A stretch of DNA of 64,000 nt from Oikopleura dioica. Its lineage: Eukaryota > Animalia > Chordata. The stretch is taken from contig OU015568.1 in NCBI GenBank assembly GCA_907165135.1, positions 7,750,001 to 7,814,000 on the forward strand. Direction: 5' to 3'. The notes under the pieces were generated by a model that did not search any database, was not told the DNA's origin, and saw nothing but the letters and a program-made list of their open reading frames with translations. Below, piece after piece: positions 7,512-15,345 of this stretch. Numbering within the stretch: position 1 is the first letter of the stretch; each line of letters starts with the position of its first letter. The translations under genes and the position numbers were made by a program.

Positions 7512-8095
7512 CTAGTTGAGTTGACCGCAGTCGGAGATGATGACTTTCTGCTTAGTAGTTCCACTTGAGCTTCCGACACGCTCGATGTTCTTGACGACAT
7601 CCATTCCATCAACAACGCTGCCGAACACCACGTGTTTGCCATCAAGCCAGTCGGTCTTCACGGTGCACAAGAAGAACTTAAATTTTTAAAGAACTACCAA
7701 CTAACAGTGGTGGTACCTGTGAGCCATTTGTATGCTTGCCGCAGTTAGCCATGGACAAAACTCCAGGACCAGTATGCTTCAAGTTGAAATTCTCATCCTC
7801 AAACTTGTTTCCATAAATCGACTTGCCTCCTGTGCCGTTATGGTTCGTAAAGTCGCCGCCCTGGGTTCAAATTGGAAGAGTTTTCAGAGCATCGTAAATG
7901 TCAAACCTGGCACATAAATTGAGGAATAACCCGGTGAAAGCTAGAGCCCTTGTATCCAAAGCCCCTCTCTCCAGTGCAGAGAACGCGGAAGTTTTCAGCT
8001 GTTCTTGGAACCACATCCGATCGGAGCTCCATGACGATTCGGCCAGCTCTTTGGTTGCCGATCATCATGTCGAAATACACTCGCGGAAGCGACAT
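7512..8095 (-). CDS. PPIA: Cyclophilin A-type peptidyl-prolyl isomerase, 3 exons
   Basis: [49 protein letters not shown]|[19 protein letters not shown]|[15 protein letters not shown]. Confidence 0.95.
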
Positions 8096-9583: not shown

Positions 9584-9699
9584 AGTAGTTTTTTTTAATA
9601 AAGATATTAATTTCTGATTACTCGTGTGGCAGTAGTAAAGCCATCATTTATTTCATTTCCAGTTCAAAAAATATATCTACAGTGGCTTAAATCTGGCAG

Positions 9700-11814
9700 T
9701 TATGTTTCTTCGTCTTCAAAAACGAGATCGCGTTCTTTCACATGAAAAATTTCTCTGTCTTGAGTCAAGCACGCGTGATTGAAGTCGGGTGGTAACTGGA
9801 CTGGCTCCAAGGGCGTCGAGGCGACGATTTCGTAAGATGCGTCCGAATCGTAGTCGGTTTCGTAGTCTTCGTTGTCTTCAGCCTCTTGACCAGCTGAAAT
9901 AATAAATAACCTTCTGATCAACTTTCTACAGTATTTGCTTACCCAGAGCGCAGTTCGCATGGTCTTCACAAATATTTTCTCGAGCAATTCGGTTTCCTTA
10001 ATAATTATTTAGTTTTTTTAAATAGGTTTTCTATTAATTTACCTTCGGTAGTATCGTCCATGATCTCAAGATAATCGTTCTCTGGAAAATTTGTCGCTTC
10101 TGTTTCTTTTTCTTTAATGTGGAAATTCAATACTGAAAGAAGACAAAAGTTTGAAACTAATTTCCACCGTTCCTTGGGTAGAGTCGACTTCCGGTTTCTG
10201 CGCGACAATTCGAGAGGTGCTCGGCTTCTCCATCTGCTCAGTCTTGATTGACATTGGTCGCCTTCTCCACCAGTTGTCGATCTGCGAACGGGTAAGATTT
10301 AATTCGAGGGAGATCTTATTCATGGTCTCTTCCGATGGCTTCTCGGCACTCTTTTCGTATTCTTCTTGCAGTCGGTTTCGTTGGGCATCGCTGAATTTTC
10401 TAGGATCTTTCAATTCTGCCGCAGGGTTGATTTTCCTTTCTTTCTCTCTTCGCCTGTTGAACCATCCACGGATCAGAGCACAGTTCTTCCCAAGTCTCTT
10501 CCGGAAATCGTCAAAATCATCCTTCGAGGGATACGCATTTTTGCGAAGGCCTCTTCCAAAAAATTTACTTCGTCCTCACTGAACACTTGAGCAGAGTTTT
10601 TCTTCTTGGACTCTTTCAACTCTGCCTGAATTATCTTCTTAGCCTTCTGCCTTCTGTTATTGAACCATTTACTGATTTGAGCCTGAGTTCTGCCAAGCGT
10701 TTTTGCATAGTTTTCCTGGTCTTCTTTCGATGGATAAGTTTCACTTGCATAAGCTTGTTCCAAAACTCTCTATCTTCCTCCGTGAACTCACTTCGACGTC
10801 CTTTTTATAAGTTCTCAACTCCGAGAAATTTTTAAACTCTGGATTCGTTTTCTTTTCCTTGTGTCTCCTGTTACAGAACCATGCAACGATCTGCGTAGCT
10901 GTTTGGCTGAGCGTTTTTCTGAAATCTTCGACATCCTCGCTTGACGGATACGCGTTCTTCTCGAAAGCTCTTTCCATAAAGTCGACATCTTGTTTACTGA
11001 ACACATATCCTTCGCCTGTCTTTCTGCCGCGCTAAAAATATGAAGTCAGTAAATTTTTCTCTAGTAAAAGAGGGGGTCACAATTATAATTATTACACAAT
11101 TATTATTATAGTGATAATATCATTTTCCAATCAGAAGACTCACAATTAGCTAATTTACCTTTCTCTCCGCAAGCAACGGTTCTTCCTTGATTCCTTCGAC
11201 TCCCAAGCCGACACGCTCTTCGTGACCCTCAATCGTACCTTCAACCGAATTTTCCGGGTGCGCGTCATTAGCTACGGTTTGGGGTTTGCGTCAGTAGTTA
11301 CGGTTGCGTCAATAGCTACGGTGCGTCAATAGCTACGGTTAAAAATGAGTCATAGGGACCATAGAAATTGACACACAGTTTAGGGTGGGCATCAACCTAG
11401 GTCGGGTTTGCCGGTTATTTAGAAAACCAGAAGAATTTGAAGCTATCTAGGTCGGTCAGAACGAGAGTGTGGTCGCTTTACGCTTCCAAAAAAGTAATAG
11501 GTAATATTGTGCACAATGTTTATTGAATAAACGCTAAAAATGGTATTTTTTCATATTGGTATCACTTTTGTAAGCGAAAAGCGACCACACTCTCGTTCCG
11601 ACCGACCTAGATAGCTTCAAATTCTTCTGGTTTTCTAAATAACCGGCAAACCCGACCTAGCTTGATGCCCACCCTAAACTGTGTGTCAATTTCTATGGTC
11701 TCTATGACTCATTTTTAACCGTAGCTATTGACGCACCGTAGCTATTGACGCAACCGTAACTACTGACGCAAACCCCCAAAACCGTAGCTATTGACGCGCA
11801 CCCGAATTTTCCAT
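9700..11814 (-). CDS. Divergent protein with four tandem homeodomains; exon 1 is interrupted by a transposon and the assembly shows three 1-nt frameshifts (gene or pseudogene)
   Basis: Helix-3 motifs WFCNRR, WFNNRR, WFNRRR and WWRRR, each preceded by F-S/T-x-x-D/Q..L/M-E..YPS/KPS; ATG at 11812-11814 directly after acceptor tttttttag. Confidence 0.75.
11256..11803. mobile_element. Foldback/MULE-like non-autonomous element, 548 bp
   Basis: TIRs of roughly 230 bp starting GGGTGCGCGTCA; exact 9-bp TSD GAATTTTCC at 11247-11255 and 11804-11812. Confidence 0.92.
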
Positions 11815-12525
11815 CTAAAAAAATTGCATCAGCTTTGAAAAATGAATCTCCTAAAATCTCTATTCGTTTCTTCTTGCGCAATTTTGAGTGATTTCCGCTT
11901 CTCTCTAACTGATTGAAAATCTAGAAAACAGATGAAAAAGAAATGATTTTTCTCGTTGATTTCCATTTGCCGAAGAGAAATACTGATGAGTCATGATTAG
12001 GCTTCTTTTTGACCCATGACTCATGACCAGACCAATCTCGAAGTTATTATGAAAGCAATTTGACAAGACAGAAACGTTGTAATTGAAGTCGTTGTAATTG
12101 TCGTGGCTAGCTGAAAGACATGAGCACTATTTGCAAAAAAGCTTTGGCCGTAATTCGCAGCGGAAGTCACCCTCTGCTCGAAACACGACATGAGCGAATT
12201 TTAATCCAGGAAATCGCGCTAATCCGCAAAATACGGAAAATTTGTATTTATCAGGGTCACACGGTACTTCTACAGGATGTTTAGACACGTTCTTTCATGT
12301 TAAAGTTCAGTTTTCCGATTTCGTAAAGCTCCAAATTCAATTTTGGAATAGCCTCAAGGACCAAATCTGGCGCTGCTCTTACTGTAAAGAGAGAGGCAAA
12401 CTGTCAGGAGCCTATTCGTGGCGCCAAGCGGCGGACAAGTCTTGTTAAGTTGTTTCCGTTTGTGACACCAAATCGAAAATAAATTTCCAAAGTGTCAAGT
12501 TCCTAAATAACAGACAACTTAAATC

Positions 12526-13182
12526 GGCTACACGACGTTTTGACTAAACCGACGTTCTCGCTAACCGACGTTTTCGCTAAACCGACGTTCTCACTAAAAG
12601 TCAAAACGTCGGTTTGGTCAAAACGTCGGTTTAGTCAAAACGTCGGTTTTCCTTAAAAATGCGGGGGAAATCAGAGCGAATGAGAATAGGCTCTTCCTGG
12701 ATTAAAAATTCTGTCTAAAGCCCGCCGTCTTACTCAAACCGAAATTTCTCTTAAAGTGTTAACTTGGAAAAACAAAATATATATATTTTTTAATTTATTA
12801 TTTTAAAATTATTATTTGAATAACAAAATCAATAATTTTAAAAAATATTAAGTCTGCATAATTTTCTGATCTTTTTATATTTTATCGGTCTTGAGATCAT
12901 TTTTAAAAGATTTATTTTAGTCATATTAGTTAATTTAATGAAGATATTCATTATTCTTATACTTTTACTCTTCACAAAGATCTTTCGAAAGATAATGAAA
13001 ACGTCGGTTTCCAAACTGAGTCTTAACCAAATTCAAGCCGCCCACGCATCTTTAAGGAAAACCGACGTTTTGACTAAACCGACGTTTTGACCAAACCGAC
13101 GTTTTGACTTTTGGTGAGAACGTCGGTTTAGCGAAAACGTCGGTTAGCGAGAACGTCGGTTTAGTCAAAACGTCGTGTAGCC
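12526..13182. mobile_element. Foldback/MULE-like MITE, 657 bp
   Basis: TIRs of about 135 bp starting GGCTACACGACG, built from ACCGACGTTTT units; AT-rich core; 9-bp TSD ACTTAAATC at 12517-12525 and 13183-13191. Confidence 0.92.
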
Positions 13183-13506
13183 ACTTAAATCGCCGCCGAT
13201 ACATAATTTCAATTCAAGCGAGACACATCAAAGAGCTTGATTCTGTCGCTCATACCTCGCTGCTATCTCTACCTCCACAAATACAGATACCGCATTTTCA
13301 CTATCAAAACTTTATGGAAAGACAAACGGAACTATTCAGCTCTTTATATTTATTTTAACTATTCACAAGGAAAATAAAGCATAAAGAAAAAGCAGCGTTG
13401 GGTAATTTTTTCATACAGTAGAAAGCGCATTACTGAGTATCAATCCCTTAATTTACTCTTCGTTTGATTATCATCTTCAAATTTTCATTTTTTTTTTCAT
13501 ATTCAA

Positions 13507-15345
13507 TCATTTTGAATATGGTCGACGATTCTCCAGATTTTCGGTTTGATTGTCGGTGCTGGATTTTCTCCCCTCAGCAGGCGGAGCAGGGCTAGAACTT
13601 GAAGCGCTTTTGTCTTCGGGAAGGGGGTCCTCTTCCTTGATTTCAGAGGATTCTTCTTCCCGCTCGCGAGCTAGAGAGGGTGTCACGTGGACAGTTGGCT
13701 CTACTTCAACGATCGACAAAGCCGACTCATCAGCGGTATCATCTAAGTTTTCGTTAGTTCGTGAAAAATATGACCTTTTTCTACCTTTTCCATCGATAGA
13801 ATCATCAGTAGTATCCTCCTTGTTTCCGGACTCCTTCTTTAATCTTCTCCTAGCATTCGCAAACCAAGTGCTTACTTGCGTCAGGGACATTCCTAAAGTG
13901 GAATGAATGATCATAAAGTTCATGAAAATAAACACCAACCGGAAATGAGTGCGAGCATCACTTTTTCTGCCTTAGTTGGGTAGGGATTTCTTGGATGTTC
14001 CTGGAGCCATGACTTGAGAGGACCAGTCGATTCCCGAGCTGTTTGTCGCCGCTGGATGGTACTTTGTGGGTGGAAGGCTAAACCACCGAATGGATAGCCT
14101 GTTGGGAGAAAGCCGGAGGATGGGTAGAGCTAGAAGTAGCCGTTAGTAGTTTCCTGGGAGAGTAATTATCGTAGTTGAAGAGTCTTATATGTTCCCAGGC
14201 TGCTCACTACATTTTTACGATTTCTACTGTGCTTAAAGTACCTCTAGTAAACAAGCTATTAAGCGACCGCTTCAAAGGCGCCCATCACCCCCGGTTTCCG
14301 ATGTCATTTCGCCTTTTTACACGATCATCCCATGGGAGACTCATTAAACTTTGCGCGAGGACGACACGCGGATTATCTGGCGCCTTCTCAGCCAAATAAA
14401 ATAATTAAGAAATGTACCTAAACCAGCAAAAGGGTATCAAGACTTCGGAAACGGAAATAGATGAGTTAGAATGATGATGATGATGATGATGATTACCCAC
14501 CCACCCGGGAGCTTGAGAACCTGAGCACATTTCGTAATTAGGAAAGGGCTCGGTAACCTGCGTAGTAAACCTGAGTCATGGTCTGAAAGATTTCCAATGA
14601 AAAGCCGCGTAGCGGCTTTTTGAAGAACAAAGCCGCGAAGCGGCTTTGCAAAGTCATCTTTTCAATCGATTGCGGCTTAATTGTCAAAAAAGACGCTACG
14701 CGGCTTTTCATTGGAAATCTTTCAGACCCTGACTCAGGTTGCCGAGCCCAAACATTGATTATGATCCTCAAGTTGAGAGGTTAAAATCACCCGGAGAAAC
14801 CGAAAAAAGGGAGGATTTCTGGAGCCTCCCTGATTCCGAAAGTGACGTGGATGATTTGCTAGCTGTGGGAACGCACTAGCGATGCCCTTTTCGCCTAATC
14901 TCTGTCCTTTCAAGTTAACATTATGTTACTTGTTATGTTTTTAGATGATTACGATGAGCCAGGCGTCCAGGTGACGGTTCCCATAACATTTTCAACACTA
15001 ACAGGTAATCATTGTGAATGTCATGGGTTTTTGTTTAATTCTTTATGAAAAGGTCTCGAGATTATTTTCAAGATATTTATTGAGTTTTCCGATATGTTTA
15101 CGGGACGATTTATCGATAGATATTAGCTTTAACTTACCGGACTTCCTGGAAGAATGGCTGGAACACGAACATCACTGACAGCTGGTGGAACTTGGGTTTG
15201 AAGCTGGAGCCTCTAAAATTTATGACTCATGAAAGCTCATTTTCTTCCTTGATTTCAATCAATATTTGCATTATTTTGTTAGGCCATAAATTATAAAGGC
15301 ACCGAATTAAACTGCACTTACATTGATATGTTCTCCAAAATTCAT
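13507..15345 (-). CDS. Irx: Iroquois (TALE-class) homeobox protein
   Basis: ARESTGPLKSWLQEHPRNPYPTKAEKVMLALIS|GMSLTQVSTWFANARRRLKKE. The two 5' exons (MNFGEHIN|RLQLQT..PGSP|) are inferred from phase-0 GT-AG joins and are less certain. Confidence 0.88.
14540..14750. mobile_element. Same MITE family, in an Irx intron
   Basis: gggctcggtaacctg ... caggttgccgagccc ends with internal AAGCCGC..GCGGCTT hairpins. Confidence 0.75.

Follow-up and report, generated by a model that had tools for sequence, protein, structure and literature searches.

A four-homeodomain gene of Oikopleura dioica with a transposon and three frame breaks in its coding sequence

Does a gene that carries four homeodomains (HDs) in the larvacean Oikopleura dioica still work, and where among homeobox genes does it belong? 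Both questions arise from a locus in the 64,000-nucleotide stretch chr1:7,750,001-7,814,000 (the window) of the OKI2018_I69 genome, which was searched as a 64.28-Mb assembly of 19 contigs. The gene occupies positions 9700-11814 of the window on the minus strand, and we model it with five exons, the large one of which emerged from three-frame translation of 9650-11260. As assembled, this copy cannot make its 426-codon protein, since a miniature inverted-repeat transposable element (MITE) interrupts coding exon 1 and the reading frame breaks three times in exon 2. We lean towards the view that this copy is a genuine null allele or pseudogene of recent origin, whose counterparts in relatives are functional. 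The family to which it belongs is small, fast-evolving and multi-homeobox, has been found so far only in Oikopleura-type sequence, and is apparently undescribed.

Gene model and the four homeodomains

An earlier, sequence-only reading had placed a four-homeodomain gene at 9700-11814. This span does contain the gene, but it also takes in the transposon at 11256-11803, which had been missed; the placement of the gene on the minus strand was absent from that reading. Exon 1 comprises 33 codons in two parts. Its start (11804-11814) holds the ATG at 11814-11812 and the E-N-S codons, and its remainder (11159-11255) ends in …VEGTIEGHEERVGLGVEGIKEEPLLAERK, with the donor GTAAAT after base 11159. We regard exon 1 as genuine because relatives share it. 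The MENS start is common to this gene and the public paralogue model P0002, which begins MENSTGIGNEPLLVEKK/RGKWNK, as is the motif EPLL(A/V)E(R/K)K. The orthologue described below begins MENFYFLPEDK/RGRKKG and has an intron at the position matching intron 1.

Intron 1 (11032-11158; 127 nt, GT-AG, phase 0) is followed by exon 2 (10158-11031), which carries all four homeodomains. The stop-free pieces of this exon lie at 10744-11031, 10634-10804, 10476-10769 and 10117-10575, and when the exon is read with X at every break it comprises 292 codons with no stop codon. Downstream of intron 2 (10100-10157) come exon 3 (10043-10099), which has predicted junctions and an open frame, exon 4 (9943-9996), also with predicted junctions, and exon 5 (9703-9893), which ends in …HVKERDLVFEDEET before the stop codon TAA at 9700-9702. 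The three introns 3' of exon 2, as placed by predicted junctions, are 58, 46 (between exons 3 and 4) and 49 nt long, and each is GT-AG and of phase 1; all four predicted introns are thus GT-AG and frame-keeping. The coding sequence comes to 426 codons if the three missing bases are included. Exons were used singly as search queries and were joined only in a local script for the frame check. Exon 5 encodes the acidic tail that had been proposed for this gene, for which no matching family was found in Pfam.

The four homeodomains are real. When the Pfam profile PF00046, with its gathering score of 22.9 bits, was applied to the stop-free pieces of exon 2, HD1 scored 48.9 bits, the C-terminal part of HD2 47.9 bits, and the piece with the C-terminal part of HD3 and HD4 43.5 bits in two stretches. 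All the peptides quoted in the sequence-only reading were found in the translation, and its residue calls stand: position 50 is C, N, N and R in HD1-HD4, and position 51 is N, N, R and R, such that HD3 and HD4 lack Asn51. HD1 (10843-11022) has C50, N51 and R53, and its N-terminal arm lacks R5. HD2 (10629-10808) has R5, N50, N51 and R53. The canonical contact residues W48, F49, N51 and R53 are present in both, whereas HD3 (10426-10604) has N50 and R51, and HD4 (10234-10416) has W49, R50, R51 and P53.

HD4 is a divergent subtype, with a one-residue loop insertion and a short third helix, and is the best PF00046 stretch of its piece (residues 60-106). An AlphaFold model of HD4 has three helices with a predicted local distance difference test score (pLDDT) of 77-86. 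In a Foldseek comparison of this model, the engrailed and BarH homeodomains superposed at a root-mean-square deviation of 0.8-0.9 Å over 45 columns (engrailed at 0.8 Å). The proposal that a two-homeodomain unit had been duplicated was rejected from the identity matrix and a self-comparison of the DNA. HD1 is 47% identical to HD2 and 47% identical to HD3, identity between HD2 and HD4 amounts to just 23%, and no long internal repeat was found in the DNA of the gene.

Paralogues, an orthologue and the history of the family

The gene had been read as a single novelty; it is instead one of three loci in the OKI2018_I69 genome. A search of this genome found only two further family loci, which lie in tandem on contig C2 in the X-specific region. 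One of them, a four-homeodomain paralogue, had already been annotated automatically as OKI2018_I69.XSR.g14130. It carries its four homeodomains in one exon, has the MENS start, and its tail ends in HVKERDLVFED. Domain by domain, HD1 of our gene pairs with HD1 of this paralogue (56% identity), HD3 with its HD2 (51%) and HD4 with its HD3 (47%), and the acidic tails are 55% identical. The two genes differ in that the paralogue has an extra terminal HD4-type domain, whereas our gene has an extra HD1-type domain, HD2, instead. HD4 of our gene forms a separate subtype, and its loop insertion is common to HD3 and HD4 of the paralogue.

A MITE also interrupts the paralogue. This element of 431 bp (L013:7330-7760, C2 about 3,162,329-3,162,759) splits the third homeodomain of g14130 between its W48 and F49 codons, has 21-bp terminal inverted repeats (CTAGGGTCGGCAACCCAACAA) and an 8-bp target duplication (CTGACTGG), and is different from the MITE in exon 1 of our gene. 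Two Tara Oceans metagenome contigs (L023 and L024) carry the paralogue exon without the MITE at 96% protein identity, and the metagenome allele P0001 is an open reading frame (ORF) of 277 residues with four homeodomains. Between the metagenome and OKI copies, the nonsynonymous and synonymous divergences (dN/dS) are 0.018/0.093, and this ratio of about 0.2 indicates that the four-homeodomain paralogue is under purifying selection. The public model P0002 (OKI2018_I69.XSR.g14130.t1, 201 aa) splices from the middle of the second homeodomain to a short exon and then to the tail, and passes over two and a half homeodomains; the interruption of the exon by the MITE is the probable cause.

The second paralogue lies just upstream of g14130 (L013:4005-5891, C2 about 3,159,004-3,160,890) and has five homeodomains of the NPYPS…WF.NNR.KHG type. 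An intron of about 50 nt with GT-AG ends follows each of its first three homeodomain exons, and its acidic tail contains …LPDDFTHPVL…. This paralogue looks intact, and tandem duplication of exons seems to have enlarged it.

The closest relative of our gene is an orthologue (L022, protein P0004) on a 1281-bp Logan contig (1-1281) assembled from run SRR23998815. It is intact and has only two homeodomains. Domain by domain it is nearest to our gene, with 62-65% identity in HD1 and 58% in the tail, and the two share the linker IKTEQ..SSRIVAQ, which the four-homeodomain paralogue lacks. The orthologue has the same exon 1 and intron 1 structure and the same C-terminal motif HVKERDLVFED, and the region matching HD4 is deleted from it. 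Should this contig derive from a lineage sister to O. dioica, homeodomain number would differ between lineages (two versus four).

Members of the family share a short first exon MEN…, two to five homeodomains of typical length in one exon or a run of exons, and an acidic C-terminal region. The conserved end motif …YEI(V/I)…HVKERDLVFED is found in two closer family members, and HVKERDLVFED itself does not vary among three genes. HD1 pairs with HD1 of both the orthologue and the four-homeodomain paralogue, and HD2 is the extra HD1-type copy. Judged from these pairings, the history of the family was probably one of gain and loss of single homeodomains, with counts of two, four, four and five over four genes.

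The view that the gene is lineage-specific was borne out in protein-library searches, in which close relatives came only from Oikopleura-type sequence. A whole-library search with the HD3/HD4 piece against 1.84 billion representative proteins, with expectation values (E) up to 1e-3, returned 65 matches, of which P0001, P0002 and P0004 were the only close ones. The other matches that were traced are unrelated multi-homeodomain proteins of stick insects, a fungus, an amoebozoan and environmental contigs, with 25-34% identity. When P0001 was searched against the ESM Atlas, only generic homeodomain clusters came back, and their values of 0.80-0.82 are below the counting level. Literature searches gave no description of the family; a 2005 survey of Oikopleura homeobox genes was outside their coverage.

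Frame breaks, the MITE and the state of this copy

The sequence-only reading had restored three single bases in exon 2, and the frame indeed shifts three times, each shift being repaired by one added base in an A/T run. Break 1 (10802-10806) is one base short in an A/T run (T5 on the plus strand) in the linker between HD1 and HD2. Break 2 (10762-10765) is one base short in an A4 run and cuts helix 1 of HD2, and break 3 (10538-10542) is one base short in a T5 run and cuts the loop between helices 1 and 2 of HD3. At all three, homologous sequence resumes in the next frame after the base is added. Tiny introns in place of frameshifts were rejected, as homologous residues run straight across every break.

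Are these breaks real or errors of the assembly? It is possible, and carries appreciable if minority weight with us, that the gene is intact and functional, the breaks being uncorrected nanopore homopolymer deletions and the MITE being spliced as a new intron or present on one haplotype. Several observations weigh in this direction and against a null allele. All three breaks are single missing bases in A/T runs with an inferred true length of 5-6, and they coincide with the longest A/T runs of exon 2. Such a missing base is a typical error of 2019 nanopore data. The OKI2018_I69 assembly was built with Canu from nanopore reads and polished by three rounds of Racon and one of Pilon, the last with MiSeq reads of amplified DNA, and its authors caution about homopolymers (PMC8008620). 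A single Illumina polish from amplified DNA makes local polishing gaps possible. With the three bases restored, no stop codon interrupts the 292-codon exon. Assembly error would nevertheless have had to strike three times inside a unique stretch of 270 bp, although the long open exons nearby, which total 11.4 kb of the window and contain 155 A/T runs of four bases or more, show no break; the comparison is biased, since openness was the reason for picking these exons. Overall, the frame breaks fit nanopore error as well as they fit real slippage.

Several further searches bear on the breaks, and their blanks carry no weight. A word search with the HD3/HD4 piece gave no match to an independent Okinawa-type allele, exact look-ups of the two ATG-started broken ORFs gave no record, and a word search with the orthologue P0004, over a length range that admits the intact exon ORF, returned only P0004 itself. 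In JGI metagenomes, an exact DNA pattern across frame break 3 with either run length gave no matches, and a protein-guided scan gave no relative. Searches of public protein collections gave no predicted protein that covers exon 2, the best whole-library match being the paralogue at 46% identity. This absence suggests that annotators obtained no model here, and it counts against an intact gene.

The second lesion is of another kind. A foldback MITE of 548 bp (11256-11803) is inserted in coding exon 1 directly after the M-E-N-S codons, that is, after codon 4. It is flanked by an exact 9-bp target-site duplication (GAATTTTCC), one copy of which lies at 11804-11812 and the other, at 11247-11255, opens the remainder of exon 1. 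Its arms of 214 nt are 97% complementary, with terminal inverted repeats GGGTGCGCG...CGCGCACCC, and no ORF in its interior exceeds 40 aa. A genome search found at least 12 further copies of nearly full length with 75-94% identity, and we identify the insertion as a MITE because the genome holds many copies; terminal inverted repeats, a target-site duplication, multiple copies and the lack of coding capacity are all present. This family of elements of about 550 bp was seen at 15 or more other places in the genome, with internal subrepeats of 17-18 nt (GCGTCAATAGCTACGGT) and 9-bp target duplications, and on contig C4 two of its copies, near 4,928,771 and 4,930,171, are separated by 1.4 kb.

Translation from the ATG runs into the MITE and ends after eight codons. 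The remainder of exon 1 offers no second start codon, and the first in-frame ATG beyond it falls within helix 1 of HD1. An insertion of 557 bp cannot be a homopolymer artefact, and the MITE is a reason, separate from the frame breaks, to doubt the function of this copy. Two points soften this conclusion. The MITE could be allele-specific or spliced out, and an in-frame GT…AG pair at its ends could remove it and re-establish the frame with a loss of only two codons. The candidate acceptor, however, lacks a pyrimidine tract, and in-frame G[TCAG]…AG pairs near the ends of the elements are too frequent by chance (12 here and 45 for the MITE of the paralogue) to be evidence of splicing.

In the OKI2018_I69 genome two of the three family members, our gene and g14130, have a MITE in their coding sequence and otherwise bear the mark of purifying selection, which raises a bolder version of the same idea. 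Both elements might be removed from the transcript as brand-new introns, in which case our gene would be functional and would represent a new Oikopleura-specific homeobox class with a number of homeodomains that varies between cryptic species (two versus four). MITE-derived introns have reportedly been described in another larvacean. We consider this combination improbable.

How old, then, would an inactivation be? Against the orthologue L022, dN/dS of the gene is 0.22/0.69 (about 0.3) over 122 codons. With the four-homeodomain paralogue as outgroup, unique amino-acid changes number 3 versus 4 in HD1 and 8 versus 7 in the tail, with no excess in our gene. Introns are kept in frame, there are no stop codons, and the only signs of decay are the frame breaks and the MITE. 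Past constraint, balanced rates and frame-keeping introns imply that any inactivation was recent. The same values also speak for an intact gene.

An old dead pseudogene, with the whole family as non-functional debris of homeobox duplication, would account for a coding sequence with a transposon and three frame breaks, and for the several homeodomains of the family that lack Asn51. We give it very little credence. The splice sites are intact and no stop codon is present, dN/dS is 0.2-0.3, the relative rate is balanced and the C-terminal motif is invariant in three genes; moreover, the five-homeodomain paralogue looks intact and the metagenome alleles of the four-homeodomain paralogue are open. 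Between these extremes, a recent loss of function in this copy remains the reading that we favour, by a modest preference.

Neighbouring genes, proposed function and homeobox class

A TALE gene had been placed next to the locus, and an Irx (Iroquois) gene with a PF05920 match does lie 1.7 kb upstream of our gene on the same minus strand (13510-14129); an intron interrupts its homeodomain between …VMLALISG and MSLTQVSTWFANARRRLKKE. Near the paralogue cluster on C2 no Irx match was found, the other Irx-like matches being far away, and the adjacency to which the sequence-only reading had attached meaning therefore looks incidental. The Irx gene has three weaker relatives at other sites of the genome, and in two of these the matching stretch contains stop codons. 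On the other side, a gene for a cyclophilin-type peptidyl-prolyl isomerase (PF00160, at least two exons) lies at 7512-8095, also on the minus strand.

The 426-codon product of an intact allele would probably be a nuclear regulator of transcription. HD1 (Cys50) and HD2 (Asn50), which keep W48, F49, N51 and R53, could bind TAAT-like sites. The lack of N51 in HD3 and HD4, and of R53 in HD4, makes these two more likely to be protein-contact or spacer modules than canonical DNA-binding domains, and a protein-contact role would parallel the one suggested for degenerate homeodomains of ZHX and HOMEZ. The acidic tail would probably serve in activation or partner binding, and its hydrophobic-acidic motifs, YEI(V/I) and DLVFED, are possibly similar to SUMO-interaction motifs.

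If the family is functional, O. dioica has lineage-specific multi-homeodomain regulators in which the number of homeodomains changes fast (two, four, four and five in four genes), and the family offers a compact system for the evolution of transcription-factor architecture in a very fast-evolving chordate, with a conserved C-terminal motif that matches no known family. The locus also allows one to test, in the OKI2018_I69 reference, how real gene decay can be told from nanopore homopolymer artefact, and it exemplifies MITE insertion into coding exons; should the MITE be spliced as an intron, it would show intron gain in progress in O. dioica. For homeobox classification the addition is modest, because multi-homeodomain proteins and orphan lineage-specific homeodomains are already well known.

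The sequence-only reading had set the gene outside the described classes, and the structure searches agree, as the top solved-structure matches differ for each homeodomain and all are weak. HD1 matched POU2F3/Oct-1, BarH and Nkx2.5 (E about 1e-6), HD2 matched PBX/Exd and SIX1, and the HD3/HD4 piece matched tandem engrailed best (about 1e-4), then BarH, ZFHX3 and ZHX (0.005-0.02). The domains are not of the TALE type, given that HD1-HD3 are of typical length, HD4 has one extra residue, and PF05920 scores are below those of PF00046. The absence of zinc fingers and other domains also stands: no C2H2 pattern occurs in the three minus-strand frames of 9600-13520, and Pfam returned no zinc-finger or other domain.

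The family could instead belong to a described group, ZHX/HOMEZ, as a tunicate branch that became highly derived and lost its zinc fingers. Zhx is chordate-wide, the single Ciona gene encodes a protein reduced to one zinc finger and two homeodomains, and Homez is a divergent Zhx relative (PMC7144352). On the side of this origin, the fourth homeodomain of the four-homeodomain paralogue passes the threshold of the Pfam Homez profile PF11569 (31.5 bits, cut-off 21), ZHX1, ZHX3 and ZFHX3 are among the top solved-structure matches of P0001 (E about 1e-4, beside engrailed and PBX), and the HD4 piece matches ZFHX3 (E 0.007) and ZHX3/ZHX1 (E 0.014-0.02). These scores are, however, no better than those of engrailed, BarH, POU and PBX in the same searches. 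PF11569 gave no match among the pieces of our gene, no zinc finger lies between the Irx gene and the stop codon, no shared motif outside the homeodomains was found, and none of the 20 source-traced proteins (of the 65 found) is named Zhx or Homez. We judge descent from ZHX/HOMEZ unlikely. From profile and solved-structure matches, the family is best treated as an unclassified, Oikopleura-restricted multi-homeobox group with weak similarity to ZHX/HOMEZ.

HOMEZ has several homeodomains, no zinc fingers and an acidic region. Like ZHX1-3 and HOMEZ, the Oikopleura gene is a chordate gene with several homeodomains per protein, some of them without canonical contacts, and its HD4-type domains have a weak affinity to that group; unlike them, it has neither C2H2 fingers nor a shared motif outside the homeodomains, is much smaller and has its own conserved C-terminal motif. 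The POU homeodomain resembles HD1 in its third helix and the residues that follow (WFCNRRHKEKKTNP in HD1, WFCNRRQKEKRIN in POU), both have Cys50, and POU2F3 is the best solved-structure match of HD1 (E 1.4e-6). Our gene differs in that a Pfam search found no POU-specific domain in any piece of exon 2, the loop between helices 1 and 2 is of the YPS type, and the other homeodomains match other classes best. The DUX genes of mammals share with this family a lineage-restricted distribution, fast evolution and tandem homeodomains that arose by internal duplication, and DUX4 was among both sequence and fold matches. In contrast, both DUX homeodomains are DNA-binding and PRD-like, the two groups differ in how many homeodomains they have and of which subtypes, and there is no signal of orthology. 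The multi-homeobox Mux genes of amphioxus are likewise lineage-restricted and fast-evolving, with tandem homeodomains produced by internal duplication.

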